Shown here: positions 35,560 to 61,039 of the stretch, one piece after another
Layout of the letters: each line of letters opens with the position of its first letter
Position numbering within the stretch: position 1 is the stretch's first letter
Assembly (NCBI RefSeq): GCF_001194135.2
Contig: NC_068986.1
Coordinates: 6,760,397 to 6,824,396 of the forward strand
Direction: 5' to 3'
Source: Octopus bimaculoides
Lineage: Eukaryota
Length of the DNA stretch: 64,000 nt
Translations under genes and position numbers: made by a program
Notes under the pieces: generated by a model
The model's input: only the letters and a program-made list of their open reading frames with translations
Told to the model about the DNA's origin: nothing
Database searches by the model: none

Positions 35560-35672
35560 AGAATCACAGCAACAATTGATGTCACACATCATCCCTTTCA
35601 GATCACAAGAACATGGCACAAACTTCTTACTTAGAGGGTCGATATTATTTAACGTATGTGCTTCTAGTTGTA
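35560..35672 (-). CDS. TCTN2: TCTN2-like exon: (L)QLEAHTLNNIDPLSKKFVPCSCDLKGMMCDINCCCDS
   Basis: Acceptor tattttag, donor gtaagt, phase 1 to 0, 113 nt; diagnostic tectonic cysteine cluster. Confidence 0.93.
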
Positions 35673-38981: not shown

Positions 38982-39162
38982 AACTGATACTTGATATATT
39001 ATATTCAACAGAAGGTTTTAAAGAGACAAATGCACTGAAGGTTGCATTTATGTTTGGTACTGAGACCACAAAGCAGTTTATTTTCACTGTTTCTTTTATG
39101 TCAGCCTCCACAATACTTGTTCTTTTTAGTTGTAATAATTTATAAAATGGTCCATTGTTAAC
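38982..39162 (-). CDS. TCTN2: TCTN2-like N-terminal exon: VNNGPFYKLLQLKRTSIVEADIKETVKINCFVVSVPNINATFSAFVSLKPSVEYNISSIS(L)
   Basis: Acceptor ttttttccttag, donor gtaagt, phase 0 to 1, 181 nt; fits the next exon. Confidence 0.8.
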
Positions 39163-39924
39163 CTAAGGAAAAAAATGAGAATCTTTAAATGAAAAATATT
39201 TTGTAAACTGAAATGTAACACAGATATAAAATAATACATGAAGTTTGTATTGGTGTTGGAGATAAATCCCAGGGTGATTTGAATGTAAAACTCATTTTAT
39301 TCTTATACCAATTTCTGCTCAATTCCTAGATCAACATCATCATCATTTAATGTCCGTTTTCTATGCTGGCATGGGTTGGATGGTTTGTTAGGAGCTGGAC
39401 AGCTGGAGGGCTAAGTTTTGGCATGGCTTCTATGGTCAGATACCCTTCCTAATGCCAACCACTTTACAGAGTATGATAGGCACTTTTTACATGCTACCAA
39501 CGTGGGTTCGTTTACGTAGCACTGGCATGAGTGAATTTACATTGCACTGGCACCTGCAAGAGAAAGAATACTCAGCTGGGAGGGGGGGAGCATGACTATA
39601 ACACACATGTCTGTATGTATGGATGGCCACAATTTTACTAAGCTTGACATGTCTTCTCAGGTACAGCCAATCACCACAAGTCCTGTTCCTTGTCATAAGC
39701 CAGGAAAAACACACAGCAACTCAGAGAAAAGTTTCACATACTGAGATACTACAATTTATTGATACAAATTTCCAATTAAAAAGTCATCTGAATTAAAATC
39801 TTCAGTCAAAATTTCATGATAATTTATGTTCCAAACATTAATTTCATAATGACAAAGTTATTTAAAACCTTCTTTGTTATTTTCAACAGTAATTGAAACA
39901 AAGTGTATTTCACTAGAAATATTC

Positions 39925-40450
39925 TTTTATTCGTTTCAGTCAATTGACTGCGTCCATGCTGGAGCACTGCCTTTAGTCGAGCAAATCGACCCCAGGACAT
40001 TCTTTGTAAGCCTAGTACTTATTCTATCAGTCTCTCTTGCTGAACTGTTAGATGACGGGGACATAAACAAACCAGCATCAATTGTCGAGTGATGTTGGGG
40101 GGACAAACACAAACACACCGAAGCTTTGTGATTGAATTTGGTAGGGGGAAGTTACTGCTGTGTGTGTGTATATGTCTGTGTATGTGCTTGTGCCTCTCTC
40201 CCAGTGAGTGAGAAAGGGAATATGACAGGCTTCTTTCAGTTTTCGTCTACCAAATCCACTCATAAGGCTTTGGTCGGCCCGAGGCTATAGTAGAAGACAC
40301 TTGCCCAAGGTGCCACGCAGTGGGACTGAACCNNNNNNNNNNGAGGCTATAGTAGAAGACACTTGCCCAAGGTGCCACGCAGTGGGACTGAACCTGGAAC
40401 CGTGTGGTTGGTAAGCAAGCTACTTACCACACAGCCACTCCTGTGCCTAT
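39925..40450 (-). mobile_element. tRNA-derived SINE containing an assembly gap
   Basis: Reverse complement of the 26951 family. Confidence 0.8.
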
Positions 40451-40469
40451 GAGAAAGATTCGACCCTTG

Positions 40470-41020
40470 CGCCATAGCTCTCGACTTCTGGCACGGACGA
40501 CAAGATTTGGCATTGGGCTTCTCCCGGTTCACTCGTCGTTACATAGGGAATCCTGGTTGGTTTCTTTTCCTCCGCTTAGCGATATGCTTAAGTTTGGCAG
40601 GTAGTCTCGCCTGAGTTGAGGGCAGCGTGTGAGAGTGTGCTACATTCATGAGCTGGCAACTGCTGCTGCCGCCACAGCTCCATTGGCTGGCACGAACACT
40701 CGCAATGAGATCCACAGAGTGAATGCCGACCGATGGCAGCGGCCATGGAAGGGAGGCAACAAGAGCGGTGTTGGGTGGGCAGGAAGGAAGGAAAAGCGAG
40801 GATGCGTATGAGACCAGCGAGCAAGTGGCAGATAAGAACAGACCGGGCGTCTGTCTGCTTCGTTTGTAGTCATCGTTGTCCACACGCATGCAGCCTTGCT
40901 GTTCCTCTACTACTGATGCTGCGGATGTCGGACTCTGTTACGTGTTGGCCACATGCTTCGCGGCAGGTGGTATGGTCGTTGCAGCGTTTTGCAATGATGG
41001 TCTGGCATGGCGGGTAACAA
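40470..41020 (-). mobile_element. GC-rich RTE-like LINE 3' region
   Basis: RLHACG/MRVDNDDYKR..Q...LIASVRASQWS resembles the C-terminal part of RTE ORF2. Confidence 0.45.
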
Positions 41021-41114
41021 AAAAGTTAATACATTTCTTTTATATCTCTTATAATTTTATTAGAGCAAAATTAATATAGAACTTGAGAGATAATCTGTGT
41101 CAATGGCTTCTAAC

Positions 41115-41194
41115 CTTAAAAATTCTTTCATCAAGTTCCCAAACATTGTCAGAAATTTCCTTTTGAATTCCACTGCTATCATTAAATGTGTTGT
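41115..41194 (-). CDS. TCTN2: TCTN2-like N-terminal exon: (N)NTFNDSSGIQKEISDNVWELDERIFK
   Basis: Acceptor atattttacag, donor gttaga, phase 1 to 0, 80 nt. Confidence 0.72.
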
Positions 41195-41586
41195 CTGTAA
41201 AATATAAAGTATAATGAAAATTAAGTAGAATACATACAACCAAGCCTATAGTATGTTGAGAAAACAAAAACAGTCATAAATCTCAGATAATGAAATGAAC
41301 TTAATGCGAAGAAAAAAATAACTAAAAATTTTATTATTTAATAAGTCAACAAAATTTTGTGGGGAGGGGCATCTATCTTTTAAAATACATATCATTGTAG
41401 AACAAATTTTTAACTTAGAGGTTCAGCAAAAGGGACTGGTAGAATAAGTATCAGGCTGGGGTCATGTCATTTGACTAAAATTCTTCAAAGGCCCCAGCAT
41501 AGCTGATGTATAATGACGGAAACAAAAGAAAAGATAACTTTTCTTTCAACTGCTACTTCAAAACAGTATTTGCTTTATCAACTTAC

Positions 41587-41719
41587 TTGCCACAGATGGA
41601 ACTGGAAAACATTTTGAGACTGCTGCAATGCTTTGAGAGCAATCTACTGTCACCACATTACATTGGATAATAGAGTTCATAATATCTTCAATAATAAGAG
41701 TTGTGTAACTTAAATACAC
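41587..41719 (-). CDS. TCTN2: TCTN2-like N-terminal exon: VYLSYTTLIIEDIMNSIIQCNVVTVDCSQSIAAVSKCFPVPSVA(N)
   Basis: Acceptor cctttatttag, donor gtaagt, phase 0 to 1, 133 nt, open frame. Confidence 0.75.
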
Positions 41720-41999
41720 CTAAATAAAGGAAGAGTGAAATAAATAGAGTAAAATATATAACAAAGAAAATACTGTATTGGAGAAAATACTTGAAAAACT
41801 TCCTAAAATTGAAATTCTAGGTCCATATCAAACAAAGGATATTGGAATAATTTAATCAGAATGAATATAGAGATCACAGATTCAAATGGTTAGCACTCTC
41901 AAATATAGATAAATCAGACGCCATCAAATACCTTACCAAAACATCGACACTAATTGCCTTAACTTCTTTGGTGATGAGAAGAGATAGGAGTCTTTGTCA

Positions 42000-42860
42000 A
42001 ATCTGCCTACTTACAGGCCTCATTCATTTTTCATCTCCAGGCTTCTCTAAGGAACAGAGACCATGCTTGTAGAAAAAGACAGAGAAATAAGACAGCATGT
42101 CTGTGAGTCACAGGCTAGAATATGTCTGTTTGAGGTTTTGTGCCAATCAGACAATTGGCATTCCTCTGGATGTGCTCTGAAAATGTATGAGTGAGTAGCA
42201 ACAGCTCCATCCAGATGTGAAAACAACATTCCATTGTGTGCTTCACCTGAAATTCGTAGAATATTAGTAATTGCATGGGAATGAAGTATTTTCTAGCCTT
42301 GAAAAGAAGGGATTGTCTTGAAGTTCTAGCTATGTTAAGGATTGTGTTTTCACCAGAAGAGATCCTGTGTAATAGTAAGGCCTAACGATAAGAGCAACTG
42401 TGAGGGCTCTAGCTGTATAGTGTTTAAGTGGGGTTGTTACAATGTTTACTTGATATGTAAAGGGCTTTTACTCTCTTATTACCGAGACGATGACACTTTT
42501 GAAGTCTCCGTTCATGGAATCATTGAGGCTCTGGGATGTAGTCTCAAGGTTGCATGTGGATGATGCATGGTTGCAAGTGAGGTCCAAAATATAGTTGGGC
42601 ATATCGAATATGGAACTAAAAAGAGCTCTGTCAACATATGGTTTGATAGTACCTTCTGATAGGAAGCTAGTGATCCAGGAAATAAGAGATGAATGGAATC
42701 AATAGGAGGCATTTTTGTGATGAGATCTGTTTGCCAGGCATGGTTGAAAGCTTTGCTGATATTAAAAGGTGATGAGATTACTTTGATCAAATTTCTTGAA
42801 GTTAAGAACCAGCTGGTGGGTGACATAAAATCCAGCTCTCTTCAGAAACAATAGTGGTAA

Positions 42861-42905
<45 letters not shown>

Positions 42906-43480
42906 GAAAGACTGAAGACTTTGGTGCATATTGGGACGAACTGTAGAGTGCAATATTTGAAGGCAATGGAAAGGACATTGTTAGAAATAAGTGTTGTTGA
43001 TTTGAAGTGATCACAGGTATTTGTGTACTTGAGAGGTGTACAAGGTGGTGAACTTCATGAGGTGGGAGGGGAGATAGACATGGAGTAGCTCAACCAATTA
43101 TATGCAGCATGGAGTTGGATGCAAAGCAAATAACAAAGGTGGATGCTTTCTCCATAGAGGTACTACTCACAGAGCCATTGTTGTTGATAAATGGAAGAGG
43201 ATTCTGCAAAGTGGTAGAGGTCCTTTTGACAAGAGACCAGACGGATTGGATACAGTTTGGGAGGCAACAAAACTTGCGAGATGTGTAAGACATGGAGAAC
43301 ATTTCTTATGGTTTGGATAGAAGATAAGGATTGAAAAGATTGTGTTGTAAAGATGAAAAGGATGTGGTGTTTGTATGTGAATAAGGAGTGATGATTGAGA
43401 TACAGGATTGGAATGCAGTGAGTTTAGTCCTGGTTTTTGGCATCATAAAGAAGTATGAAAGTGTGATGTTACATGGACAG
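42000..43480 (-). mobile_element. CR1/Jockey-like LINE RT remnant
   Basis: WSLVK...PLPFINNNGSVSSTSMEKASTFVICFASNS; ISKAFNHAWQTDLITKMP (SKAFD motif). Confidence 0.7.
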
Positions 43481-44232
43481 GTCATAGTAATCTTCTGCTA
43501 GAAGCCTTATGTAAATGTTTACAACAGAACAAACTGCTGTAAAGGCAACCCTGGTGGTATTACACAAGGTGGTGGTATAACAGGCAATATGTTTCTACCA
43601 TAAATGAAGAAAGGAAACCAATACATTAAAACAATATTAGAAGAATAAAGTGTCTAAAAGAGTGATATAGCTTTTGCAACAGCAGATGATGATGATGGTA
43701 AAATACAGGATTACAAAGTGTGTAATGTGGTAATGGTAACAATGGAGATGCAATGTATAAGTAGTCGCCAGTCACTTATGATGTCAGTGCAATGATGTTG
43801 CTATCATATTGTATGAGAAAAGAATATTAAATGGAATTTTTTTTCTTTGAACCAACCAATGTCCAGAGAGTAATCAATGTAAAATGAACTTTTGTTGCAT
43901 TTTTATAAAAAGAGTAAGACTACGTTGAGTATGTAAAGGAGTATTTATACAATCTACCAAAATTAGAATGTATGTCACTCGGCTATATTAGGCCTGAACA
44001 GAATCTATACACTTAAAACTGCAATAATTCAATTGCTGATCCCATCTGCTTATTAATTAGGGCTTTAAGATGAAATAAGCTTCTCAACAAATTAAGGTTT
44101 CAAGCACACAATAGTTTGTCATAAGCCATGTCACATAACAAAATATTTTTTATGCCCAAAACAAAATCTCAAAAATTCTAATTCCCCCAACACTTAACTC
44201 ATTTGATAATGCAAAAAAAAAAAAAAAATTAC

Positions 44233-44315
44233 CTGAAATGATAGAGTTTTCACTTTAAGGGTTGAAGGATGAAAATTTAGAAATACTTGATTTTGTTGAA
44301 AACGTGTTGGATATC
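44233..44315 (-). CDS. TCTN2: TCTN2-like N-terminal exon: (G)YPTRFQQNQVFLNFHPSTLKVKTLSFQ
   Basis: Acceptor ttttcattccag, donor gtaatt, phase 1 to 0, 83 nt; the only open frame. Confidence 0.7.
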
Positions 44316-44676
44316 CTGGAATGAAAAATCAAGAAAATCTTTAATATGAAGAATAGTAATAGAAGATATGAAGGACAAAATAAGCTTCCTACTAAGATAA
44401 CAAGTATAAAGGGAGTGAAAATTAAAAGGAGCAGAACCCTTACACACAAAATTCAACTGTTATAAAGACTCTAATCAATACACCCAGCAGCCCTTCTTTT
44501 ACCATGTGCTATCATCATAACTTCTGCTTTTATACACAGACTTTTAACCTGCCATAATATTTCCTAAACCTTCCTCTCTTTCAAATTATGTTAAACATCT
44601 TTGTAATTATTTGGTCAGAAACTCATTTACCTCCAACCATACCCAGCCTGGAACCTTCAAATGCTTCAAGTCATAC

Positions 44677-44704
44677 CTGTAGTTTTACTAGCCAAAAACA
44701 CTAG
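44677..44704 (-). CDS. TCTN2: Tentative 28-nt micro-exon: LVFLASKTT(G)
   Basis: Acceptor gattttcag, donor gtatga; phase 0 to 1 bridges exons 46419 and 44315; polypyrimidine tract is weak. Confidence 0.45.
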
Positions 44705-44719
44705 CTGAAAATCCCATCT

Positions 44720-46135
44720 TTTCATCATCATCATCATTTAACAACTGTAGTCCGTGCTGGCATGGGTTGGACGGTTTGACTGGGCTGGCATGAAGGAAGG
44801 CTACACCAGACTCCAATCTGATTTGGCATGGTTTTCTACCAGTACAGGTGCCAATTTGCATGACACCACCATCTACCATGACTGCGATTTTGGTTGGCTT
44901 GATGGGTCTTCTCAAGCACAACATAATGCCAGAGGTCTTGGTCATTGCTTCCGTGAGGTCCAACAATCGAAAGGAACTCAGCCACTTTACCTCTGTGAAG
45001 CCCAAGGCTCGAAAGGAACTCATCCACCTTGCCTCCATGAGGCCCAAGGCTTGAAAGGGACTCAGCCACTTTGCCTCCATGAGGCAAGACGTTCAAAGGT
45101 TGATTTTTTTCTTTACGTGCCACCAGTATGGGTGCACTTGGCTTGACAGGTTCTCTTAAGTAGAGCACATCGCCAAAGATTTCAGTCACTAGTCATTGCC
45201 TCTGTGAGGTTCAAAGTTCAAAGTTTATGCTTCACAGTCTCATCCCATGTCTTCCTGGGTCTACCTCTACCACAGGTCCCCTCCAATTAAAGATCAGCAC
45301 TTCTTTACACAGCTGTCCTCGTCCAAACACATCACATGACCATACCAGTGCAATCATCTCTCATGCACACCACATCTGATTCCTCTTATGCCTAACTTTG
45401 CTCTCAAGATATTTACACTGTGCTGAACATGCACACTGACATTGCCCATCCAGTGAAGCATACTAGCTTCATTGCTTTCAAGCCTACACGTTTCCTTGAC
45501 TGTCATAGCCCATGTTTCACTGTCATGCAGCATAGCTGTTTGCACACAGGCATCAAACAATCTGCCTTTCACGCTGAGAGAGAGGCCCTTTGTTGCCAGG
45601 AGGGGTAGGAGCTCTCTAAACTTTGTCCAGCCTAATCTTATTTTCACAGCCATGCCCTCGGAGCATCCACCTCCATTACTAACTTGATCACCTAAATAAC
45701 AGAAGCTGTCTACTACCTCTAGCTTGCCCCCCGCTTCCAGCAGTGGATGGAGTCTATTTTCTGCACATTTTCAGCATTTATTGTACTTGTGCACCTTCCA
45801 TATACAAAAGCTATTTTCCCTGTTAACCTTCCTCTGATGTTGCTGCACCTTTTTACCAAAGCTTACACTGGATGCATCTTATGAAGTTTTTACCAATGCC
45901 TTTTCTACAGATCGTGCAGGGCCATGTACCTGAAGGGATTTGTGATTTGTCTGCATTCCTACTTACTAAGACTTTGGTTTTTACTAGGTTAACTCTAAGG
46001 CCCTTTGATTCTCGACCTTGCTTCCATACCTGGAACTTCTCTAGTTCAGGTAGTGATTCAGCTATAAGAGCAAGGTCATCAACATAGAGGAGCCCTCAGG
46101 GGCAGCCTGCCTCAAATTCCTCTGTTTGAATTCTT
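44720..46135 (-). mobile_element. 5'-truncated RTE LINE
   Basis: LLYVDDLALIAESLPEL; RLGWTKFRELLPLLATKGLSL.VKGRLFDACVQTAMLH.SETWA; (CAT)n tail at 44722. Confidence 0.88.
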
Positions 46136-46418
46136 CTTTTGTTACTGACAAATTCCTCTGTTCTTGGACCAAACTCACTACATTGTTTCCATGCTCTGCA
46201 AGGTGCAAAACAACATGCTAGTTATGTGATTATTACTCAAAACATCTTAATGTGTCTAATATCAAGGGTTTTCCTCAGAATATCAATTAGCCTGGTCACA
46301 CTTCAGAGTATCTTTTGCTCTCTGAAAATCATTTTCTGAGATTTCAATGTCCACAACTCTTCTTGGGTCTCTATATCCTTCTAACAGCAATACTCCTGAT
46401 GCAAAAACTAAATCTTAC

Positions 46419-46468
46419 CTTTCTGACTGGTGTACAACAGTTATTGGTATTCTTGATCATAGACACAT
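46419..46468 (-). CDS. TCTN2: TCTN2-like N-terminal exon: (D)VSMIKNTNNCCTPVRK
   Basis: Acceptor ttatgttttag, donor gtaaga, phase 1 to 0, 50 nt; the only open frame. Confidence 0.65.
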
Positions 46469-47345
46469 CTAAAACATAATTGGTCTCTTTCTTACATCCA
46501 AACCCAGCCTTTACCAAACTACTATTGTTTCCTACACATCAAAATGTCTGAGCAATGAATAACCAAAGTCAGTTACGACACATTCACATACATTTAAATC
46601 TTATGCTACTTTAAGTAAGGTGACAGGGTGAGTTGATAATTTGTTATATAGGTGACTGACTAAAGAAGAGACGAGGGAAGTTGTACTGAAAGCATAGAGA
46701 CCAGATTGAAAATGTTCAGGGTGCTACTACCTCTAGTGACAAGAGAATTTTCTTTCTAAGAAGTTAGAGTATTGAGTGGTGAAGAACTCAGTGTGTGTGT
46801 ACATAAAATATGATTGGTATATGAGACATAAAATGAAGATCATTATCTTCATTGATGGTTAATAGATAAAGTTTCTATTAGAAAAGAAAGGAGTTCAATA
46901 GTTGCTACCACTGTTGGCAACGAAAGACTTCATTCCTCATAGATTAATATCGGTCATTTATAAATAGTGTTAAGTTGCAATGGTAACAAAAATGATTCAG
47001 AACTTCAAAAGCTGAACTTATGGACATTTAAATGTGACATGTTCAGAGAAGATGTACATATGTAAAAAGTGTTAGGTGCTTGATGAAAATGTGCATTGTG
47101 CTGAGAGTAGAAAATGCCCAGAGCAGAGAAGACTAAGGAAAACATGGAAGGTGGTAGTGAAAACAGATATTGGGATGTTGGGCCTCATCGATGAAATGAG
47201 TGGGTGGTAATATGCTGGACATATGCTTGGGGAAGATAGATATCAAATCAATGAAGATAATGATGATACTATAATCAGACAGTCTGACAATAGTTAAATA
47301 ACTGTTTTATTTCATTAATATTTTAGAAAATATATTGATCATTAC

Positions 47346-47442
47346 CCCTTGATGTTGAAAGAAGATACTGGTTTCCTTCACTACTGTTAGCTTCACAGTA
47401 AACTTGCACTGGAGAACCAAGTTCTTTAACTGTGTATGAAAT
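47346..47442 (-). CDS. TCTN2: TCTN2-like N-terminal exon: ISYTVKELGSPVQVYCEANSSEGNQYLLSTSR(D)
   Basis: Acceptor ttttttaactcaacag, donor gtaatg, phase 0 to 1, 97 nt. Confidence 0.72.
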
Positions 47443-49360
47443 CTGTTGAGTTAAAAAAAAACATCTAAATATAAATTATATTGGGAATAACTCACACCAT
47501 TAAAAAAACCCATCTTAATTACAATAATGATACTATGATTTTTAGTTTTTTACACAGATTTTCTACAGTTTTTTTTAAGGTGTTGACATAAATCGAAGCT
47601 TCCATGATCCTCACCCGAATAAGTGGATGGATGGTATGTGTCTAAGTCCTGTCTAGGTTTATAAGAATCTGAGAAGACACCAATCCATTTAGTGTCCATT
47701 TTCCCATGCAAGCATGAATTGAATAAGAATTTGAGGTAGTATTTTGTAACTGGATGTCTTTCCTGTCATCAAGTCTTACCTCTTTTCCTGGGCTACAGTG
47801 GAAGACTCTCACCCAAGGTGTCAGCAGTGAGACTGAATCTGAAACCTTGTTGTATATAAGCCATACTTCTGTCTAATGCATTTTATATATTACAAGTAAT
47901 AAGAGCTTCTTTTTTTTTGTTAGACTCATAATGACTTGGAACATTTAGTGGAACCCTTTATGCATATTATCTAAGCAACATAAGTAGATTGTGAGAGTAT
48001 TTCTAAGAGCCAACAACATCACCCATTGGTCCACCCCCAAGTAGCATACCATTGTTTGGTTCAAGATTGCTTCTTCATCCAGCAGGTGTCAATATCAACT
48101 AACCACTCTCTGATGGCCATATTTCTGTCTACCACTAATGACTCCTTATCTAGTAAAAGAGCTTGCTTTCTGAATCGTGAAAAGGCATATAACTGCATGC
48201 CATGAGACATACAGTGAAGTATGGGATTGATGGGCATCTTCTAGTTGCTTGAAGTCCTTGTACAAACGCCCAAGCATTTGTGTTCTGGTAAAAGCTTCTA
48301 AGTTGAAACCCTTTCAACGTGGGTCTCTCTCTAGGGTGCATAGTCATCTCTATTTCATAACTTTTATGAACTAGATTGACATGCACGGTGGGAATAGGAT
48401 CAGTCAACTCATATTTGCGATGGAAAGCAAAAGGCCGAACTGGATGCAAGAATTGTTGAGAATTAGTGCAATAATATGCCAACTTCAGTGCTCAATCATC
48501 AAAATGGGAGGTATGTGAAGAGCTAAACCCACAATCTTCAATTTGTTTTTTCTGCTTACCCTAAACTCTGGTTTTGGATTTTAGTTAGTGACTGAAAGAG
48601 TATCATTGCTAATAAAAGCAGCTAAAATGGTATTCCTTCAAAGGGTCACTATTGGAGTAATGTTATTTGATGGGATGAGTAAAGCAGAGATTTGGGACTT
48701 ATTCCAGGTCAAGCCACTACATCTCTACATTGAGAGATCTTAGTTCTGGTTTAGTGGACATGCAGTTAAAATGTTAGGCATCCTGGGGAAAGACTCATGG
48801 GACAGATTTTTATGGGCAAAGCCAAACAATAAGACATCTTACAAGTATACCACAAGAGAATAGTTGAATCATAACCACAGCCTTTGTTGGTCTCACTTGG
48901 AGGACCAGCCAGAGCATTTGCAGAGGGTTGCTTCTGATAGGATCATCCTGCTTTCATGACGCTGACAGGAATAAGGAGGAATGAAGATGGGAATGAATTG
49001 GTCTAGATTTACAAGAATCTGAAAAGACACATCAATCCATTGCAGGAACATTACACCTCACAAGATACAGGTTCACATCCCAACTACTACTGTTGTTGGA
49101 AGCAGATGTTAAGAAGCCCACTGATATATCAACTATCCATGTTATCAGACAAAATATGAAACTACAAACTAATACTATAGGATCTATTTCAAGTACAATG
49201 GTCAATTCTCCATAAACAATAATTAAATTGCTCCTGTATTGAGGGTAAAACTAAAGAACTCTAGAGATATATGGTGTGACTAAAGCAGGACCAAAACACT
49301 AGTTGAGTTTCTTAACATTTGGCATCTTAAAAAAAATTTTTTCACCATAAACATGTGGTA

Positions 49361-49766
49361 CAGGTGTAAGAGTGGCTGTGTGGTAAGTAGCTTGCTTACG
49401 AACCACATGGTTCCGGGTTCAGTCCCACTGCATGGCACCTTGGGCAAGTGTCTTCTACTATAGCCTCGGGCCAACCAAAGCCTTGTGAGTGGATTTGATA
49501 GACGGAAACTGAAAGAAGCCCGTCATATATATATGTAAATGTGTCTGTATATATATATGTTTGTGTGTCTGTGTTTTCCCCCCAGCATCACTTGACAACC
49601 GATGCTGGTGTGTTTACATCCCCGTAACTTAGCGGTTCGGCCAAGAGACCGATAGAATAAGTACTAGGCTTACACAGAATAAGTCCTGGAGTCGATTTGC
49701 TCGACTAAAGGCGGTGCTCCAGCATGGCCACAGTCAACTGACTGAAACAAGTAAAGAGTAAAGAGC
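49361..49766 (+). mobile_element. tRNA-derived SINE, full length
   Basis: Same family as 26951-27350. Confidence 0.85.
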
Positions 49767-50125
49767 TAAATTTAAATCTATTTTAACTGAAAAAAAAAAC
49801 TGTGAGACTTGTATATAAATTCAAATTACTATCTCACTCATGGATTTTATTTTATTAAGTTAAATGGTAAAACTAAATGAAAATATAACTATTCAATATA
49901 ATGTCTGGCTAAATTTTTAGAAACTTTTGAAAAGTAGACAAGTTTATACGTTCCAGGTTTAATAAACATGGTGCTGGAACACTGACCAAGTTTAACTTCA
50001 CAACCAGTTACTCTGAGCAAGAAACACACAGACACACACAAATTTATTTAAAAAAGAAATATATAATTCAATCATAAAAATACTTATTAAATCTTAAATT
50101 ACCATTTATTGTAAGAAATACTTAC

Positions 50126-50190
50126 TTCAAATGACTTGGAATTGTTAGGGACAGTCAAATTTTCTAACATTATCTGCATGGTATTCCAAT
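50126..50190 (-). CDS. TCTN2: TCTN2-like N-terminal exon: (D)WNTMQIMLENLTVPNNSKSFE
   Basis: Acceptor tagtttcag, donor gtaagt, phase 1 to 0, 65 nt. Confidence 0.68.
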
Positions 50191-50413
50191 CTGAAACTAT
50201 TCAATGTAAACATAATTCTTATAAGAAGCCTGAAATCTTAAATCAATAGAATTAAACTATTTTGTCGGAGGATGATGCAACAAATGATGGATACACACGC
50301 AAAGCCTCTCAACCCAATAAGATGCCTTCAACAAATTTAGATACCAACTTTTTTAAATACTGTGCTGGACAATAGGAAATTTCAGTCCATTTATGAAGAG
50401 GCATTATATAATA

Positions 50414-51421
50414 CTAGCAGATATACCTGGCGTTGCTAAGGATTTAAATGGCATAGTCTGTATATATAGTACAGTTAAGTTGAAACATGTGATATGGGGA
50501 AGTGCAGCACTTGACGACAAAACATTTGTGGAGTAAATGAAGGGCTAATTCGACTAAGCAACATGTCATGCGTCTCTTTGGAAGATTCCAGGCCTTAACC
50601 TTGTCATGGAAAAGTGGGTGGTGGGTATGTGATTTCTGAATGCACCAAAAACCTCTCAGTGGATATACTTTGTGTGGCTGTTGGCGCTGCTCTACCATGC
50701 TGAATAGTCAGCAGACATAAGAACGACATCCATGTGATAAATTAAGCCTGTGGGCGTGCTCAACAACACTACATGAGAGAAATCTACATGAAAGAAATGT
50801 GGTGGAGGAGTGGCTAAAGCTGTTAATGCAGCATTCCTGGTCAGGTGAATGCTACACTGCTCATCACTTTCTATTGCTCTTGCACCATTTTTTGATTGTC
50901 TAGTTGAAGTCTCATGTGATGATTCATTTGTTCTCCTTCTTTCCTACTTCTCTGCTACCGCTGTTTTTCGACCAATTGAGGATCTTTTCTTTGGAGACAT
51001 TACGTCAAGAAATATGATGTAATAAACTAAGGTGACAATAGTATGTTAATAATGAAATGTCAAAAGAAAAGGTAAATAATATAGATATCTTAGCAAATTT
51101 TAAGAAATATATACAATGAACTGAGATATTAATTGATATCAATGGATAAGTTTTATATAGTAACATGTGTAAGCGAATTGTGCTGGCTGTGAAGGAGACA
51201 ATTTCTGAGTTACCTCCTTTGTCCACAATAATCGTTTGTAACCTAGGAAAAGGTGTTTTCTTACTCCCATAGGCCCCATTATGCATTATGTGAAAAAATT
51301 TAAGTATCTAAAACCATTTCTGGAACATACATAATGTATGTTCCCAGTTTGGAGAAAATCAGTTGTTAACTTCAGAAGTTATGCAGGTTTACACACACAG
51401 TCTGAGTTTTATATATATAGA
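50414..51421 (-). mobile_element. Non-autonomous Helitron-like element with both ends
   Basis: 3' hairpin + CTAG|T at 50414 (homologous to 5922); 5' TCTATATATATAAAACTC at 51421 (like 2680); internal continuity assumed. Confidence 0.6.
51214..51242 (-). CDS. Tentative 29-nt micro-exon: (R)LQTIIVDKG(D), inside a Helitron-like repeat
   Basis: Acceptor ttttcctag, donor gtaact; the only phase 2 to 1 bridge I found between 56680 and 50190, but it lies in repeat sequence. Confidence 0.3.
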
Positions 51422-53108
51422 CAATGAGCAGAAGAATTCTTATGGCATTTCAGTTGAAAAGAAAACAACATAAGATCTCAAGGATCTCTGACAAAAAGAC
51501 TTGTCACAACTCTTTAAATGAGTTTTTTTAGAGACTATAAAATGGTAAAAATAGCAATTATTTCAAAACAGTTATTTTTCATATGTAGTCCAGGTAAGAA
51601 GGTTGAAAAATAGAATTGGTGTTGGTTTTACATTCAATTTCCCAAAAAGAATTTGCAACAGCAGTTTTCTACAAATTTCAACTTTAAATTCACAACATTA
51701 AGTTAGTTGATTTATTCTGTTTAAACTTCAACTGGATTTTATACAACTTGATATAACTAGGGTCAACAGTAATAAATGTGAAACCCAAGTTATTGTAACA
51801 CCACTACTAGAGAAGTCTTCTTTGTAAGTTAGTGTCTTCTGTATTAGATGTCAGCTTGAGGTTCTCTAAACAAAAGCATGTGAAATGAATCAAGTGGATG
51901 TTTTTGTGAATGCCAGCACTAAACAGTTTTTTCCCCCCTATTTGTGCTTGGTGGAGCCTTTTCTACTCCATAAAAACGTAAGCTTCTTGAGGTAAACTTA
52001 AACATATCAGCAATGAACTGGAACTTCTATCACACCTGAGTTACTCATCTAGGTGAGCTGCCTTTAAACAACTTTATAAACAGTTACACTGTCCAACATG
52101 AGAAACAAGAAGGTCAAGCTGAGAATCTTAGGCTAACACAGGATGTAATTTGGCTCAATTGAAATAAACGGAAAGTGGTTTGACCTTTGAGGAGCAGGAA
52201 GTTGAGAGGAATTTTTTTTTTGTTTTTGTTACTATTCTCAAAGAAGATAAAACATGCCTTGATTTAAGCCTTGCTTAACAATGAGACTAATGTTTACTTT
52301 GAGATTCAGGTTTGTAGGATAAACATTATCCTAAAATCCATCAATAAATATTATTTCATAAAAATACAATTATTATTCAAAGAAATAACACTATCAACCC
52401 ATTCCATGAAAATAACTTAAAATCTCATTTGCTACATATATTGGGGTTCTTATCCAGAAACAGCACAGCTTAAAAGTTGACCAAAACTACATTATGAGGA
52501 ATTACTTAGTCTTAAACAGTTTATAACAAATGTAAACAAAAGTCTAACACACCTGGATTTAGTGGTGGTGGTCCCTTTTGGGACGAGCATATTACTTGAA
52601 TAGTTTAATATGGATTTAAATTATAGGAAGTATGTTATTGAAAAAGATTGATCAGCTTGGATCAATGACACACTTAAGAATAGGATATCAAAATACTTAT
52701 ATTACACATTTGAATTTTTGACCACTTATACTCCATTATTATTTAAAAGAATCCACAACTTGAAATCAAAACAATCAAAAACTGATCTCAATCCGACACA
52801 ACATCACTGAACAGTTATTCAGTCAACCAATAAAAAAAACCCTGAAGTAGTTATTACATTGTAGAAACAGTAGAATAGCTTGATATTATTTAATACGTTT
52901 TTTTAAAAATTTTTTTAAATAAATAACTTCTGAATTTTCTTACCATTCTGTTCTTGTTGACAAACTACTTGTTCAGAAACCACTTCTTGTTGACAAACCA
53001 CAGTTACTGAAGAAATAGTTGATTCACTGAAAATAGACAAAGCATAAACTACATTGGAATGAACTATCCTAACTTTTTGAATAATAACAACAACGGTAAC
53101 CACATAAC

Positions 53109-53455
53109 TATAGTAACGCCGTGCGCATGCGTAGTCTCACGCACGCGTGGAATTCAACATCCAAGCTTTCCCGCTTTATTCTGTCTCTTTCTTGACTGGC
53201 CAGCGATTGAGCAAGGACGTGTCTAGCTGTCTCTCTCCATCTTTCGAACTCACGCTAGACAGCTCACATCAACATACCAACAACCATGTTCTCACAAACA
53301 GAAGGCGTCTCAACAACCAAGAGTAAAGCTGTATATTTTCCACCATAAATAAATATTGTTTGTGTTAATAGTTTGGAGTTCTGCATTCCGTTCAATTTTA
53401 ATTTAATATAGGAAAGCAGGTGTACATCTAATGATGTATAACCCACTTTCCTATA
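53109..53455 (+). mobile_element. Solo LTR, copy 1 (347 bp)
   Basis: TATAGTAACGCC...CTTTCCTATA flanked by 4-bp TSD TAAC; internal AATAAA; homologous to 57779-58098. Confidence 0.75.
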
Positions 53456-54129
53456 TAACCATTGGCATTTTTTAGATTGATACAAACATAATGCAGTATA
53501 TTTTCAAATTTTTCAGGCATGACTAAAACAATACAAAGATCTTTGATAATTTAGTTGTAAAATTTCTGAGCTTTAAGTGATGTTAAAAAAACAGAAAGCA
53601 AGAAAAAAGTAAAAAGATTTAAGTATTGCTGATTTGTATTGAATCTGCTCTGCAAATATTGAACGAGGGAAAGAATGACTTCAGCTGAGTCAATGTGAGG
53701 AGTTGTAATGTTGCTTATAAAAATCTCCACTGGTGGCAGTTGTCATCAATCCCATATTGGATGAAAGCATCAGTATACTGAAATCGCTTGATGTTGCTAG
53801 TTGAGAGTGGTCTCGTATTTGTTGAAGATGCCTTATTAACAGCTATGAAGGTTGAGAGGGGGGGGGGAGAGAAAGCCCAAACTATGTATGGGGGTTAATT
53901 AAGTATGATTTATTATCTTTATATATAATATTTAGACATAACAGAATAAGACAGCAGGTTTCAGGAATATGGTGATGAAGATGGTCTTATCAGGTTTTTA
54001 AAAATCTATTTTCCTATAAGGATATGGACAGATTAGCAATAGAGCAGCTGTTCACCTACTTTAGTTTTTAATACTTTCAACACATAGAGACTTTTACTGG
54101 ATCAGATGACTTTTGAATTAATTCACATT

Positions 54130-56190
54130 TCATCATCATCATCATTTAACGTCCACTTTCCCTGCTGGCATGGGTTGTTAGATGGTTTGACTGGAACTGT
54201 AAGCAAGAGAGCTGCATCAGGTTTCAGTCTGATTTGGCATGGTTTCTATAGTTGGATGCCCTTCCTAATGCCAACCACTCCAAGAATGTAAAGGATAGTT
54301 TTTATGTACCACTTACATGACACCGGTAATGGCTATGACTAAGATTTTCATGGATACCATTTACATGACATTGGCAATGACCACGACTATGGTTTCACTT
54401 GACTCGATGAGTCTTCTCAAGCACTGCATATTGCCAAGGTCTTGGTCATCTCTCATCACCTCCATAAGGTTCAACATTCAAAGATAAGGCTTCACCACCT
54501 TGTCCCTCACCTCCATGAGGCCCAACATTCAAAGATCATGCTACCAGCAACAGCCATGGTTACAACTTCACAGGTACCATTTACATGACACCAGCAAGTC
54601 TTCTCAAGCACAGCATATTGTCAAAGGTCTCAGTCACTAGTCATTGCACTGTGATGCTCAATATTTAAAGATCGTACTTTCACCACCTCGTCCCATATCT
54701 TCCTGGGTCTACCGCTTCCATAGGTTACCTCCAGTTAGAGATCAGCACTTCTTTACACAGCTGTTCTCATCCATATGCATCACATGACCACACCAGTGCA
54801 GTTGTCTCTCTTGTACACCACATCTAATGATTTTTATGCTCAAGTTTCCTCTCAAGACACTTATGCTCTGTTGCTCATGCACATTGACATTACACATCTA
54901 GTGAAACATGCTAGCTTTATTTCTTTTCAACATTCACATGTCTTGTGGTAACAGCCCACATTACACTGCTGTGGAAAATGGTTGATTCCACACAAGCAAC
55001 ATACAGTCTGCCTTTCATTTTGCAGGAGAAGCCCTTTAAATACCGAAGTATTTTATTTGTTAAATGTTAACATCTTTCACACACATTTGTCACATCATTT
55101 AGTGCCCATCTTCCATGCTGGAGTGGATTTAATGCAGGACCAGTTTAGGCACTTGCCTCCATATATGAAAATAGTGTATGATGAATTTAGTGTTCAGGTA
55201 GGTGTCCACTTAGGATCTGTCCTCAGTCCCTTCCTATTCATCATCATCCTCCTCTAAGCCATAACAGAGGAATTTCAGATTGGAAACCCATGGGAACTAC
55301 TATATGCTGAGGATCTTGCATACTCTGTAACAGAATTAGAAAAACTCCAGGTGTAGAAACAGAACCTGGAATCAAAGGGTCTTAAAGTAACCAAGGTTTT
55401 TGTAAGCAGAAAATTAGACAGGACCCTTCATCCTTTCAGTAAATGGTCCTGCTCAATATGTAGGAAGGGTAAAGGCAGAATTTCTATTTGGTGTACTTAG
55501 TGCAAGCTATGGACACATGAGAAATGCAGTGGAATAGTAGGAAGGTTAACAGAGGAAGCAGAGTTTGTATGTGAAAGATGAACAGGAGTTTCAAAGACCA
55601 CTGATACACAGGAAACTAATTTACTCAAAAGCCCTGATGACTCTCTGGAAGTTGTAAATAATTTTTGCTACCTAGATGACCTAATTAGCAGTGGAGGAGG
55701 ATGTACAGAAAGTGTGATTGCTAGAATAAGAGAAGGGCAGAGAATGTTTAGAGAGCTTTTACTTCTATTGGCAACCAAAATTTCTTTCTCTGAGTGAAGG
55801 GACGATTGTATAATGCATATATATGAACTGTGATACTGCATGGTAGTGAGATGTGTACCTCAATGCGGAAGAGATGCAAAAGCTGATATGCTGGATGTGT
55901 GATGTTAGTGTGCTTGTGCAACAGAGCATTTAGAGAGAAGTCTGGCAAAAGAGGAATTAGATGCAGTGTGCCAGAGATGATACTGCATTGGTATGGTCAC
56001 ATGATGGATGAAGACAGTTATATTTAGAAGTGCCAATCACTGAAAGTGGAGAGAAGTTGTGGAAGAAGGAGACCCAGAAAGGCATGGAACAAAGTACTGA
56101 AGGCTGATTTTTAAATGCTGAGCTTTACAAAGGAAATGACAGAGGACTGAGATATGTGGCACATTGCTATACCTACAAAGGCAGGTAACA
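54130..56190. mobile_element. RTE LINE fragments: minus 54130-54990, plus 55140-56190
   Basis: VGVHLGSVLSPFLFII...PWELLYAEDL; FCYLDDLISSGGGC. Confidence 0.85.
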
Positions 56191-56679
56191 TAGTCTGAGA
56201 TTGTGTTACCCAAGGACTTACAAAAATACATGGGAAAGAAAAAAATTATTATTTCTAAAATAAACCTCAGAGTAAGAGGTGTCATCAACTTAATGGAACA
56301 AATAATTAGTTTTGTAATCAATTTTTGCCTTCTCAGACTTATTCCTAAAAACAACAGGATGAAAGGATGTGAGCAAGCAGTTAAGAGATGCTGAGAAATA
56401 TCAGTAAAATGGAAAACAAAATAAGCATTTGAATCTTACACATACTGACAGCAGTTGACTATTTTCATTACAAAGATTGAATGTCTGACAATACTATCGT
56501 TTAACTCTACATCTACACATCATCAATGAACACAAGTTAAAGCTGAACATCAAACATACTGACCTGAGGCTGTGGGAAGGAGCAGAAGTCAGCAAAGATA
56601 CCCTTCAGTTTCAGGGTGAGGATTAAAGATAAATAACTAAATAAGTTTCTTTTTTTGAAAATGAACTATCATTGTTTAC

Positions 56680-56790
56680 CTGAACATGGCACTAATAACA
56701 CCAGTTATATTTCTGGATTGGTTTCTTAAAGGAATAATGATGCTAGAGTTGCAAATATTTACAACTGGTGACTTCTTAATAACCAGCAAC
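56680..56790 (-). CDS. TCTN2: TCTN2-like N-terminal exon: (R)LLVIKKSPVVNICNSSIIIPLRNQSRNITGVISAMF(R)
   Basis: Acceptor tttatttgtag, donor gtaaac, phase 2 to 2, 111 nt. Confidence 0.65.
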
Positions 56791-57489
56791 CTACAAATAA
56801 AATTAAAAAGAACATAAATGAACATTTTCTCATGTGTGTGTGTGTGTGTGTATAATTTAATGTAAACAATATAAAGAAACAAGCTACTAATATTTTCTTG
56901 CTTTGGATACATGGGGCTAGGCAGGTTTCATGTTCCTAGCTCTGCCTCCTGCCAAGTAGGTCTCCTTCCCCTATTCCTACCCATGCAACTTTTGTTTCTT
57001 TCAATCTGACCCTTCCATTTGCCAAATATCCTCTCTTCTCCTTTAGATGTGACTACAACTTGTAAATCTTCTCGTCCACAGCTCTTTTACTTGTTGCCAA
57101 ATCCAGCCTGCATCATTTTCCTTTTTTTTTTTAGTATTCCCATTGCAACACATTTCTCTCTTCATCCAAAAAACTACCAGACCCACTATCCATTGTTATT
57201 CATCACCTCATTTACTCTGTTAAAAATGTAATTTATTGCATTAAATGTTGAGTCTGGAGCTCAATAAATATTGAAGAATCTTCTCAAAGATTAACTAATT
57301 TAGAGAACCATTTCCGAGTGTCTAATGGAACTTCCCGTTTCCAGGTCACTCCCAGTACTATCTTGCTTTTGGAAGTTTCCAACAAGCAAATGGTTTACTT
57401 TTTGCTTAGGGACATCCACAACAAAGTGTCAGTAGCTGATTGGTTTCCTTTATTTCATACCTCCCCCACACTGATAAATGTCCACACAT

Positions 57490-57766
57490 AGACACTGGAC
57501 TAGCTCCCGTGCAGGTGGCATGTAAAAAACACCTTTTTGAGAGTGGCCATTGCCAGTACTGTGTGACTGGCCCTCATGCCGGTGGTACGTAAAAGCACCC
57601 ACTACACTCTCGGAGTGGTTGGCATTAGGAAGGGCATCCAGCTGTAGTAACTCTGCCAGATCAGATTGGAGCCTGGTGCAGCCTTCTGGCTTGCCAGTCC
57701 TCAGTCAAATCGTCCAACCAATGCCAGCATGGAAAGCAGACGTTAAACGATGATGATGATGATGAT
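57490..57766 (+). mobile_element. RTE 3' tail fragment
   Basis: Family UTR and (GAT)n tail. Confidence 0.85.
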
Positions 57767-57778
57767 ACATCATACATC

Positions 57779-58098
57779 TGTAGTAACGCCTTGTCTCATG
57801 CGCATGCGTAGTCATCAATATCCAAGTTTGGTGCCCTTATTCATTCTCTTTTCTCGCCGGCCAGCGAAGAGGTCAGACACACAAGCAGTCTGTCTCCAAC
57901 ATTCCAACTCTGGAGCTAGACAAATAACCACTCAACATCAATGACGGTGTCTCAGCAACCAAAGGGCGAAGTGCTGCCTATTTCCTCTGTAAATAAATAT
58001 TGTTGTGTTGATGGTTCAGAATCTGCGTTACGTTGTTTCTTCAGAATTTAATGTACGGAAGCGGTGTACACCTAATGGTGTATAACCACTTTCCTATA
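57779..58098 (+). mobile_element. Solo LTR, copy 2 (320 bp)
   Basis: TGTAGTAACGCC...CTTTCCTATA flanked by 4-bp TSD CATC. Confidence 0.78.
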
Positions 58099-58575
58099 CA
58101 TCTCTCCAAGCCCAACATAATATCTTGCCAATACAAATAAATATTTTTATCATAACAATCTACATTCCTATTCATCTATTATGCCAATTATTTGTACTCC
58201 ACTCACCCTCTCAAACTGTTCTTTCAATGCATCATCTATATTCACTTACCACTCATAATACACTGTTAGAAACAAACCTAACTTACTCCATTTCTATTCC
58301 TCAACTGCTTTTTATGCTAGATGCTTAATACACTTATATCTTTCTGCAACAAATTTTTCTCTTTTCTATCTTTACAAAGAACAAACTGTCTGAAATACCA
58401 CTCTCTTCCCTTTCTTCACAGCAAAATTAATTTATTTCGTTTCTGTAGACTGTTTGTTTTTGGTTCCATATATAAATATTCATAAACACAACACCCCCAC
58501 CCCCACTTCTGTTAGCATTAAAAGTGGATATAAAACAATTTATCATCATCTAAATTTAAAAGCAATAAAGAATAC

Positions 58576-58698
58576 CTGGGTTTGCTGAGAGATGTATCAT
58601 TTAAGAACTGCGGATTAAGGCTTAAATTCCTTGATGCACCAATAGGATCAGATGTACCGAAGCATTGAACATTAACAGGCCGACCAGGACGTAGAAAT
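58576..58698 (-). CDS. TCTN2: TCTN2-like N-terminal exon: FLRPGRPVNVQCFGTSDPIGASRNLSLNPQFLNDTSLSKP(R)
   Basis: Acceptor atatttgtag, donor gtattc, phase 2 to 2, 123 nt; within ORF 58518..58727. Confidence 0.68.
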
Positions 58699-59389
58699 CT
58701 ACAAATATATTTTTTAAATATTTTCATAAAAGAGTAACTGCATTGATATATGACAACAGAAGCAACATTTCTAGATATAAACCATACTATTCACAACAAT
58801 TTAGTCAAGGTTTTACATTAAAACTGATTTGTATCTTTTGCAAAATGGGTTTCTATTTTTAGTAATATTTTGTCAAACTAAATCCTTTTCTTGCAAAATA
58901 TATATTACTCAAGTTTATTTTCTGTATTTTCAATAACATTTTGGATATGAAAGAAACTTATCAATGAGAAGTGAAGGCATCTTTATTGAATGCACCTTTA
59001 TTCAAAATAGCATATTGTTTAGAAAAGAAAAACATTAAAAGATCTGCTCAAGTACATCCCCAACATCTCCATTACTCCACACTCAGGAGTTGATTAACAA
59101 AATATCAATGTTATTCTTTCTCTCATTTTTTGTTTTTTTAATTTTAATTAACCTTCAACTCTGCTTGCACAAAGTATTGTATCGAGGGTTCTATAGGGAA
59201 AAAAACAAAGTACCACATGAAAAAGGAGTTGATATGTTTACCATAATATCTACAAGTTTTTATAGACATATTTATTTTGTTTAGGCTGTCAAAAAAGAAC
59301 CAGCTTAAAAACATAATTAACAGGTTAAAAGAAAGGATAATCTGTGAGACTGAATATGCTTTTTAAGTTAATAAACTGGATTTTGGCAC

Positions 59390-59448
59390 CTTTTCTCTCT
59401 AGGTACAAAACAGCCATACAGAGCTGTTCTGTAATTATTGCAGGTCAA
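59390..59448 (-). CDS. Tentative exon: LTCNNYRTALYGCFVPREK(R)
   Basis: Acceptor gctttttag, weak donor gtgcca, phase 0 to 2; fits 58698 but has no identified upstream partner. Confidence 0.3.
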
Positions 59449-59814
59449 CTAAAAAGCACAAGAGAATGAATATTTTATCTTTTGAAGTAAACTATAAAGA
59501 ACAGATTTAAAACATGAGGCTGTAAAAGGAGAAAAGAAATTAGAAAAAACTTTAAAGTTTGTGTAACAATGCTTTCTTAAATTCCCAGTGTTCCAAGACT
59601 GTAATTTGTCTGCATCAACAAAATTTTTGCAGATATTTATTTACAATTCTTGTCTATTTTCTAAGATCAATTAATATTAGATAAATGACTTTTTGAGAAA
59701 AAAAATATTCACAGGCAACCATAGTCCAACCAGTGAATTCTATTCACATAATTTGAATTGTGTATTTTTGGAGTTAATATTTTGTTTTTCTTTCAAGTAT
59801 ACTGAAATCAATAT

Positions 59815-60800
59815 CATCATCATTTAACGTCAGCTTTCCATGCTAGCATGGGTTGGCCAATTTGACTGAGGACTGGCGAACCAGATGGCTGCACCAGGCT
59901 CCAATCTGATCTGGCAGAGTTTCTACAGCTGGATGCCCTTCCTAATGCCAACCACTCAGAGTGTAGTGGGTGCTTTTACGTGTCACCGGCACGAGGTCCA
60001 GTCAGGTGGTACTGGCAATGGTTGAGTACAGGAAAAGCATCCAGCCATAAAACTCCTACCTCCATTTCCTTCCATCTAAGACAAGCTGGCATGGGAAAAC
60101 ATGTTAAATGAAACAAAAGTTTAGTTATTAGAAAATTCTGTTAATATATTAATTTTGTTTTTTATTTGAAATGCTAAATATTAGATACATCTTTAAATAT
60201 AGATCAATATTTTCAACTACTAAAAATTATATACAAGTACATTTAAATTTTGTATTTTTAGAAGGAAAACACCACTTACTCTACTGAGACATAGCCTTCT
60301 GTGATAGGAGGGATCAAGTATAAAGGTGAGAACTGAACCAAACTAAACCCATTGGTGCTTGGATCTTGTTGACAGTAAACAGTTACCTGCAAGAGAATGA
60401 TAGAACTGAAATCTAATGAATTTTAAAATATATCTTAATTTTGGTTGTTTCATTAGCATAATGAAAATGAAAAAAATTAAGCTGCTATATTAATATTTGA
60501 TGAAATCATCATCATCATCGTTTAACGTCCGCTTTCCATGCTAGCATGGGTTGGACGATTTGACTGAGAACTGGTGAAACCGGACGGCTACACCAGGCTC
60601 CAATCTGATTTGGCAGTTTCTACAGCTGGATGCCCTTCCTAACGCCAACCACTCAGAGAGTGTAGTGGGTGCTTTTATGTGTCACCCACACGAAAACGGC
60701 CACGCTCGAAATGGTGTCTTTTACGTGCCACCCGCACAAGAGCCAGTCCAGGGGCACTGGCAACGATCTCGCTCGAAAACCCTACAAGGCCAGTCAGGCA

Positions 60801-60837
<37 letters not shown>

Positions 60838-60990: not shown

Positions 60991-61039
60991 TCTGTAAAAT
61001 ATACTTGTTTACTGGGTTTAGTTACTGGAGCCAAGCTGG

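Follow-up and report, generated by a model that had tools for sequence, protein, structure and literature searches.

The 64-kb window of Octopus bimaculoides contig NC_068986.1 analysed here (the whole stretch of DNA, to which all positions refer) is AT-rich, with 36.6% G+C and three assembly gaps, and carries a tectonic-2-type gene on its minus strand. Within the window the gene consists of 19 GT-AG exons, running from position 60386 down to 16848. With the acceptor at 50196, their translation is exactly residues 79 to 1106 of RefSeq XP_014767820.1, the 1106-residue "uncharacterized protein LOC106867455" of the same species. The exon layout was obtained by tblastn with a 979-residue Octopus vulgaris protein (UniProt name Tectonic-2), which laid out 17 exons in the order seen in the window, at 80 to 97% identity per exon; a canonical AG/GT pair that keeps the frame was placed for each of their boundaries. 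Two more 3' exons (17921-17754 and 17028-16848) were revealed by the Octopus sinensis model and tblastn. An end of the gene at the TAA after 20117, as in the O. vulgaris model, was rejected on account of these two exons. The models for O. vulgaris go no further than the intron after exon 17, which explains why the hydrophobic C terminus is missing from them.

About 450 residues precede a cysteine cluster (first Cys, C455) at which the tectonic core starts. For profile comparison this N terminus was cut, using a 23-sequence family alignment, into four modules: D1 (residues 27-160), D2 (161-285), D3 (286-345) and D4 (372-452). The exons are listed below with the residue numbers of XP_014767820.1.

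60280..60386, minus: exon 1, residues 79-114, VTVYC, middle of module D1; AG/GT sites and exact RefSeq match
58576..58698, minus: exon 2, residues 114-155, GRPVNVQC, end of D1
56680..56790, minus: exon 3, residues 155-192, VVNIC, start of D2
52944..53026, minus: exon 4, residues 192-220, VTVVC and insertion QQEVVSEQVVCQQEQN
50126..50196, minus: exon 5, residues 220-243, ends with SFE in phase 0, two acceptors
47346..47442, minus: exon 6, residues 244-276, GSPVQVYC in D2, the counterpart of GRPVNVQC in D1
44233..44315, minus: exon 7, residues 276-303, ends with SFQ in phase 0, D2/D3 transition
41587..41719, minus: exon 8, residues 304-348, SIIQC, D3 and start of the short linker
41115..41194, minus: exon 9, residues 348-374, ends with IFK in phase 0, linker and first D4 strands
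40333..40342, no strand: assembly gap of 10 N in the intron between exons 9 and 10, non-coding
38982..39162, minus: exon 10, residues 375-435, VKINC in D4, corresponding to the family motif E.VVVTCC
35560..35672, minus: exon 11, residues 435-472, tectonic Cys cluster CSCDLKGMMCDINCCCD (Pfam DUF1619_N)
34196..34434, minus: exon 12, residues 473-552, remainder of DUF1619_N
29373..30115, minus: exon 13, residues 552-800, large core exon, TCTN_DUF1619 match
26350..26460, minus: exon 14, residues 800-837
23614..23725, minus: exon 15, residues 837-874
21739..21843, minus: exon 16, residues 874-909
20118..20363, minus: exon 17, residues 909-991, donor AG/GTAAAG at 20118; the in-frame TAA just after it is intronic
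17754..17921, minus: exon 18, residues 991-1047
16848..17028, minus: exon 19, residues 1047-1106 and stop TAA, CW..CWQEILYPLT, hydrophobic LVTYLTFLFISLITITQSWFLL from residue 1083

Most of the exon structure proposed by the initial annotation, which was made from the letters alone and described a TCTN2-like gene with a greatly extended modular N terminus, agreed with this model. The upstream exon at 60280-60386 was placed exactly; it has an AG acceptor and a GT donor and starts in phase 0. The start of the next exon at 58698 and the splice from the exon ending at 38982 to 35672 were also correct, and the estimate of about 345 residues before the cysteine cluster is close to the 340 or so counted from 58698 (residue 114) to C455. 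The chain from 58698 to the stop had been summed to 2998 nucleotides; its actual length is 2980 nucleotides, or 2974 with the acceptor at 50190.

The report that the window holds no ATG or signal peptide was borne out, as residues 1 to 78 of XP_014767820.1 had no tblastn match anywhere in the window. In 60387-64000 no convincing start exon was found, either by a scan for an ATG, a hydrophobic stretch and a phase-0 donor or by tblastn with the real N terminus. These results indicate that the first coding exon or exons, with the putative signal peptide, are to be sought past position 64000. The N terminus of XP_014767820.1, MALQLTFFHFTLLLTVSVITHVSTGG, is hydrophobic and represents a putative signal peptide encoded outside the window; one O. 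vulgaris isoform also opens with a signal-like peptide. A repeat origin of the first O. vulgaris exon, in which 'FYSWPFYQK' resembles a window-wide repeat, was considered and rejected, as the protein of O. bimaculoides has these residues too and other phyla conserve them ('Y.F..N...G..PVY').

The gap at 40333-40342 falls inside the 1952-nucleotide intron between 41115 and 39162, and the reading frame continues from the one neighbouring exon into the other. In the orthologues of O. vulgaris and O. sinensis, ...ERIFK/VNNEPFYK... runs straight across this junction without added residues, indicating that the gap hides no exon and that no coding sequence was lost. Exon 5, on the minus strand, has two acceptor AGs 6 nucleotides apart, at 50196 and 50190. 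The former, which adds Val-Ser, is the one in the RefSeq model of O. bimaculoides, and the counterpart of the latter is used in the models for O. vulgaris and O. sinensis; the difference may reflect alternative splicing or a choice made in modelling.

Assignment to the tectonic family, as initially proposed, was upheld by both Pfam tectonic domains, by the cysteine cluster and by the hydrophobic C terminus. DUF1619_N (PF25752) matched residues 447-521 with 35.6 bits (cut-off, 22; E 1.4e-8), and TCTN_DUF1619 (PF07773) matched two stretches with 64 bits (cut-off, 22; E 3e-17), best at residues 800-1000. The cluster CSCDLKGMMCDINCCCD at residues 455-471, encoded by 35672-35560 at the start of the core, follows the pattern C-x-C-D/N-x(5-6)-C-x(3)-C-C-C-D. 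The C terminus reads CWMNSCWQEILYPLT, then LVTYLTFLFISLITITQSWFLL from residue 1083, then DF and the stop, and fits the conserved C..CW..L.YP motif with a hydrophobic end; the same motif and hydrophobic end are found in TCTN2 of Bombina. The octopus protein contains 33 N-x-S/T sequons. Orthologues of XP_014767820.1 are CAI9725061.1 (UniProt A0AA36F466, 'Tectonic-2', 987 residues) in O. vulgaris and XP_036359361.1 in O. sinensis, the model of the latter lacking exons 1 to 3 and starting inside exon 4. The locus can safely be labelled tectonic-2-like.

The N-terminal region was described initially as a series of repeated V-x-V-x-C motifs, of which five were listed. All five exist, but the total is seven, with VVNIC at residue 164 and VTVVC at 199 in addition, and the last four of those listed are spaced by 133, 64 and 81 residues rather than by 113, 90 and 81. 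Profile comparison of D1 with D2 by hhalign gave a probability of 97.9% (E 5.6e-13, 88 columns), and the alignment paired NVTVYC with SVTVVC and GRPVNVQC with GSPVQVYC. In 30 column-shuffled controls the probability did not exceed 0.3%. The D1 and D2 profiles also cross-matched each other's region in most of the long members of the family, including sequences outside profile building. No significant similarity was detected by hhalign between D3 or D4 and D1 or D2 (probabilities of 0.1 to 15%), or between D3 and D4. When the octopus modules alone were compared by Smith-Waterman alignment against shuffles, the signal was marginal, with a best z of 4.6 and most pairs below 2.5. The D1/D2 repeat is therefore significant only with family profiles, and the octopus sequence by itself gives weak evidence. 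The profiles indicate that D1 and D2 are one genuine, ancient tandem duplication of about 125 residues each; five equal repeats are not borne out.

The phase-0 introns at SFE/ISY, SFQ/VYLSY and IFK/VNN (residues 243/244, 303/304 and 374/375) are all in phase 0, as had been noted, but they do not occupy equivalent positions in homologous modules. The D2 intron at 243/244 maps to 110/111 in D1, whereas the actual D1 intron splits codon 114, an offset of 3 to 4 residues with a different phase. Since neither the positions nor the phases of the D1 and D2 introns agree, the proposed exon-level duplication of domains is not supported; moreover, D3 (SIIQC) and D4 (VKINC) have no detectable similarity to D1 and D2.

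Structure prediction supports the tandem beta-sandwich-like ectodomain that had been suggested, at the level of fold class. In a full-length AlphaFold2 model from a 20-sequence alignment, the mean predicted local distance difference test (pLDDT) score was a mediocre 62, with a confident, all-beta N-terminal part. When the N terminus alone was modelled (451 residues, 18 sequences), the mean pLDDT was 76.6 and only strands were predicted. Blocks over most of D1 and D2 reached 85 to 96, with about nine strands in each module, and more strands were predicted at 288-329 and 366-422. Low confidence was confined to a D1 loop (135-137), the exon 4 insertion (211-221), the linker (331-362) and the tail (436-451). 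In a Foldseek search of the PDB, nearly the whole N-terminal model resembled strings of immunoglobulin (Ig)-like sandwiches (E 8e-13 to 1e-8; about 390 to 540 aligned columns; identity of at most 12%; TM-scores of 0.2 to 0.4). The Ig-like and PapD-like arrays matched, namely 7sqc_F0 and 9ijj_O of the ciliary central apparatus, integrin alpha legs, cadherins and the MG domains of alpha-2-macroglobulin, belong to the same predicted fold class. These solved arrays have no sequence-level relationship to the octopus N terminus, so that the resemblance is one of fold class and not of family membership.

Sequence searches placed the modules in no described family. Among 18 orthologous N termini, no Pfam family matched more than one sequence (best E 0.017). 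The Pfam hints of V-set or Ig-like domains in single exons were all below threshold, and a profile search of PDB sequences with the N terminus returned nothing at E up to 1. No description of long invertebrate tectonics or of their N-terminal domains was found in the literature searched. The exon 4 insertion QQEVVSEQVVCQQEQN (residues 204-219) has a repeat of VVCQQE within it, together with one additional Cys. It is common to O. vulgaris and O. sinensis and absent from the other phyla shown in the family alignment; in the gastropod Babylonia, a different insertion that contains a Cys is found near this position.

A full HMMER scan yielded 311 relatives, many of them 1030 to 1370 residues long, in collinear alignment with the octopus protein that starts near its residue 10 and takes in the core; a word-indexed protein search had low recall (1 and 5 matches) and gives no basis for orthologue counts. 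Judged by source names, several of which are automated, the long forms occur in gastropods (Haliotis, Patella, Elysia, Aplysia and Babylonia), a bivalve (Ylistrum), a brachiopod (Lingula), an annelid (Owenia), a nemertean (Tubulanus), a cephalochordate (Branchiostoma, "tectonic-2-like"), a hemichordate (Ptychodera), echinoderms (Patiria, and Anneissia, "tectonic-2-like") and an acoel (Symsagittifera, 1080 residues). The D1 to D4 profiles matched the named long forms in order, except in the acoel, where only D2 was detected; some members lack one module, such as the crinoid (Anneissia) protein, in which D3 was not matched. In 23 long forms the cysteine cluster lies at residue 392 to 580, which puts the octopus position of 455 in mid-range, and in 15 of 52 apparently complete representatives the cluster lies beyond residue 350.

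The annotated examples include Branchiostoma belcheri XP_019643538.1 (1122 residues), Anneissia japonica XP_033123189.1 (1069), Lingula anatina XP_013382566.1 (1342), Haliotis asinina XP_067680364.1 (1151) and Ylistrum balloti XP_060064682.1 (1077). Like the octopus protein, the long forms have a putative signal peptide, in most cases the order D1-D2-D3-linker-D4, the cysteine cluster, the tectonic core and a hydrophobic C terminus. Conserved positions (octopus numbering) include C83, G91, G119, C126, C203, C259 and C404, at an identity to the octopus protein of only 22 to 35%. The octopus protein differs in having a single Cys in place of the CC doublet in the VVVTCC of the family, and a linker of about 32 residues between D3 and D4 where most long forms have a Thr/Pro-rich, mucin-like linker of 60 to 170 residues; the lack of this linker makes it compact. 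The long forms of Lingula, Haliotis, Ylistrum and Patiria carry misleading automated names: mucin-17 (Lingula), mucin-3A-like, serine-rich adhesin for platelets-like and flocculation protein FLO11-like. The Thr/Pro-rich linker may be the cause of the mucin-like names.

Vertebrate TCTN2 is shorter; the human protein has about 697 residues. In Bombina bombina TCTN2 (XP_053557793.1, 694 residues) the cluster is at residue 175, with about 174 residues before it. The cysteine cluster, the tectonic core, the C..CWQ.L.YP motif and the hydrophobic C terminus are shared with the octopus protein. D1, D2 and D3 were not detectable in it with the profiles, and the similarity of the vertebrate N terminus to D4 was weak and collinear but not significant (hhalign E 1e-3, probability 19%). 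At most, vertebrate TCTN2 has kept a remnant of D4. Short candidate orthologues in other lineages, such as a lobster 'tectonic-3-like' form, also lack the array. By these sequence comparisons the four-module N terminus is the usual architecture of non-vertebrate bilaterians, in at least seven phyla including that of amphioxus, and vertebrate TCTN2 is the short outlier.

The gene is thus very probably the tectonic-2-type gene LOC106867455 of O. bimaculoides, with 19 coding exons in 16848-60386 and an N-terminal beta array that is usual for non-vertebrate bilaterians. Several points weigh against this interpretation or limit it. The exon junctions rely on the RefSeq model and on collinearity with orthologues. 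The choice of TCTN2 over TCTN1 or TCTN3 would rest on automated names, on the hydrophobic C terminus and on a best-hit test in which the best non-vertebrate matches of Bombina tectonic-2 were long forms, within a set biased by containing hits to the octopus protein only. TCTN3 likewise has a transmembrane helix, so that the C-terminal helix does not single out TCTN2. The core in the full-length AlphaFold2 model is of low confidence (pLDDT 62), and D3 and D4 may be two separate sandwiches or the two halves of one. Localization and function in the octopus are drawn by analogy from vertebrate, nematode and algal tectonics.

With regard to the history of the array, we lean, with little more than even confidence, towards an ancestral bilaterian tectonic-2 that had a beta-sandwich array of about 430 residues (the D1/D2 pair, D3 and D4), which most non-vertebrates keep and vertebrates lost. 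It is conceivable, though unlikely, that D1 to D4 all derive from a single ancestral sandwich and that D3 and D4 diverged past profile detection. All four modules are predicted to be all-beta, each with a conserved Cys on a V-x-V-x-C-like strand, and Foldseek aligned nearly the whole N terminus to repeated Ig-like domain arrays, as a common origin would predict. However, the hhalign probabilities of D3 and D4 against D1 and D2 were those given above (0.1 to 15%), and the strand regions of D3 and D4, about 45 and about 60 residues long, fall far short of the 125 or so residues of D1 and D2.

That the long form is a gene-model fusion, in which the exons from 60386 to 44233 come from another gene, for a small secreted protein, and the tectonic gene starts near 41719 or 35672, is very improbable. 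An older annotation of the same species, the 316-residue UniProt entry A0A0L8I0I6, does cover only residues 1-303 followed by a different last exon at about 42066-42027, and the RefSeq model of O. sinensis has its start within exon 4. In contrast, more than 14 named species, from at least seven phyla, have the array and the core collinear within a single protein, and all octopus junctions are canonical and in frame. Single open reading frames of 1129 to 1201 residues run uninterrupted through the extension and the core on contigs of only 3.9 to 4.5 kb, which argues against a fusion artefact. Furthermore, no zona pellucida (ZP) domain, which the UniProt name of A0A0L8I0I6 ('ZP domain-containing protein') implies, was found by Pfam.

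The aligned exons of A0A0L8I0I6 (residues 79-303) are identical to the window except for the two-residue acceptor difference. Its alternative terminal exon, HGLCSLEKPGDEK, lies at 42027-42066 on the minus strand, in place of exon 8. A ZP module was rejected on Pfam evidence: Zona_pellucida had no match at E up to 10 in the fragment, in the full protein or in the 18 N termini. ZP proteins were also absent from the top 50 Foldseek matches.

A recent, repeated duplication of exons, specific to cephalopods or molluscs, that produced at least five equivalent modules might be suggested by the sevenfold V-x-V-x-C motif, the three phase-0 introns and the exon 4 insertion with its VVCQQE repeat, absent from the other phyla shown in the alignment. 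It can hardly be credited at all, given that deuterostomes (amphioxus, starfish, crinoid and acorn worm, among others) have the same modules, conserved at the same Cys, Gly and Arg positions, that only D1 and D2 are detectably related, that their introns differ in position and phase, and that the octopus modules are barely alike among themselves.

For the octopus protein, the gene model and the predictions suggest a signal peptide followed by an all-beta array of about 430 residues, with D1 at about 27-160, D2 at about 161-285, D3 at about 286-330, a short linker and D4 at about 365-450. The cysteine cluster, the DUF1619_N and TCTN_DUF1619 core, the C-terminal hydrophobic stretch and four final residues would follow. 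The hydrophobic stretch is probably a single membrane helix. Based on the secretory-type N terminus, the sequons, the Cys-rich core and the hydrophobic C terminus, the product would be a type I membrane glycoprotein.

Most of the tectonic complex lies outside the cell, bound to the membrane, and it contributes to a diffusion barrier that slows the passive diffusion of membrane proteins through the transition zone (PMC10500017). Judging from vertebrate work (PMC10500017), a component of the MKS module would be expected to localize to the transition zone and to bind TCTN1/3, TMEM67, B9D1, CC2D2A and MKS1, and the octopus protein may do so. By homology, it would join the MKS/tectonic complex of the ciliary transition zone, and this complex would slow membrane proteins that diffuse laterally into or out of the cilium. 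The added sandwiches may simply make the ectodomain taller and extend it outward. In Chlamydomonas TCTN1, regions outside DUF1619 have been suggested to aid targeting and stability (PMC12723291); these flanks are not known to be related to D1-D4.

The locus was already modelled correctly in RefSeq, though named only "uncharacterized protein", and its architecture is standard outside vertebrates. The initial annotation was thus partly confirmed: the observation was largely right apart from errors of arithmetic, and the implied novelty was not. The N terminus that it described as greatly extended is the standard one in at least seven phyla, and the comparison of N termini among relatives found the long form already annotated across invertebrates, an outcome that the initial annotation itself had named as refuting its proposal. 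The consequence for genome annotation is small. What is mildly new is that the conserved modules D1 to D4 belong to no Pfam family, have no relative of solved structure and are not described in the literature searched. A D1/D2 domain family would correct the mucin-, adhesin- and flocculin-like misnamings and would provide a testable piece of protein for study of the extracellular face of the transition zone. Some 300 residues of conserved ectodomain (D1-D3), kept by most other bilaterians, are missing from the vertebrate TCTN2 of ciliopathy research. If the array is indeed ancestral and was lost in vertebrates, work on tectonics in model organisms has dealt with a truncated ectodomain, and the lost modules may make contact with partners that are extracellular or belong to the ciliary necklace.

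Other elements were detected in the window. In the intron between exons 10 and 11, an open frame of 215 residues on the plus strand (35904-36551), containing ...GKAPGPSEITTEMLK..., looks like a retroelement fragment, for which Pfam gave nothing at E up to 0.01. A frame-shifted mariner-type transposase fragment (Pfam Transposase_1, E 1.3e-7) lies at 18756-19327 on the minus strand, in the intron that separates exons 17 and 18. A dispersed repeat with the translation FYSWMPFL(M/T)PTT, probably similar to a short interspersed element, is present in at least eight copies on both strands, mostly in introns of the tectonic gene (e.g., 13806-13844, 25403-25441, 28704-28736, 34032-34064, 54244-54276, 59921-59953, 60618-60650 and 60956-60994). 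Downstream of the tectonic gene, on the opposite strand, an Arg/Gly-rich open frame at 10112-10594 (plus) without a Pfam match contains about ten tandem PRGM/PRGA tetrapeptides and may be an exon of a neighbouring gene.

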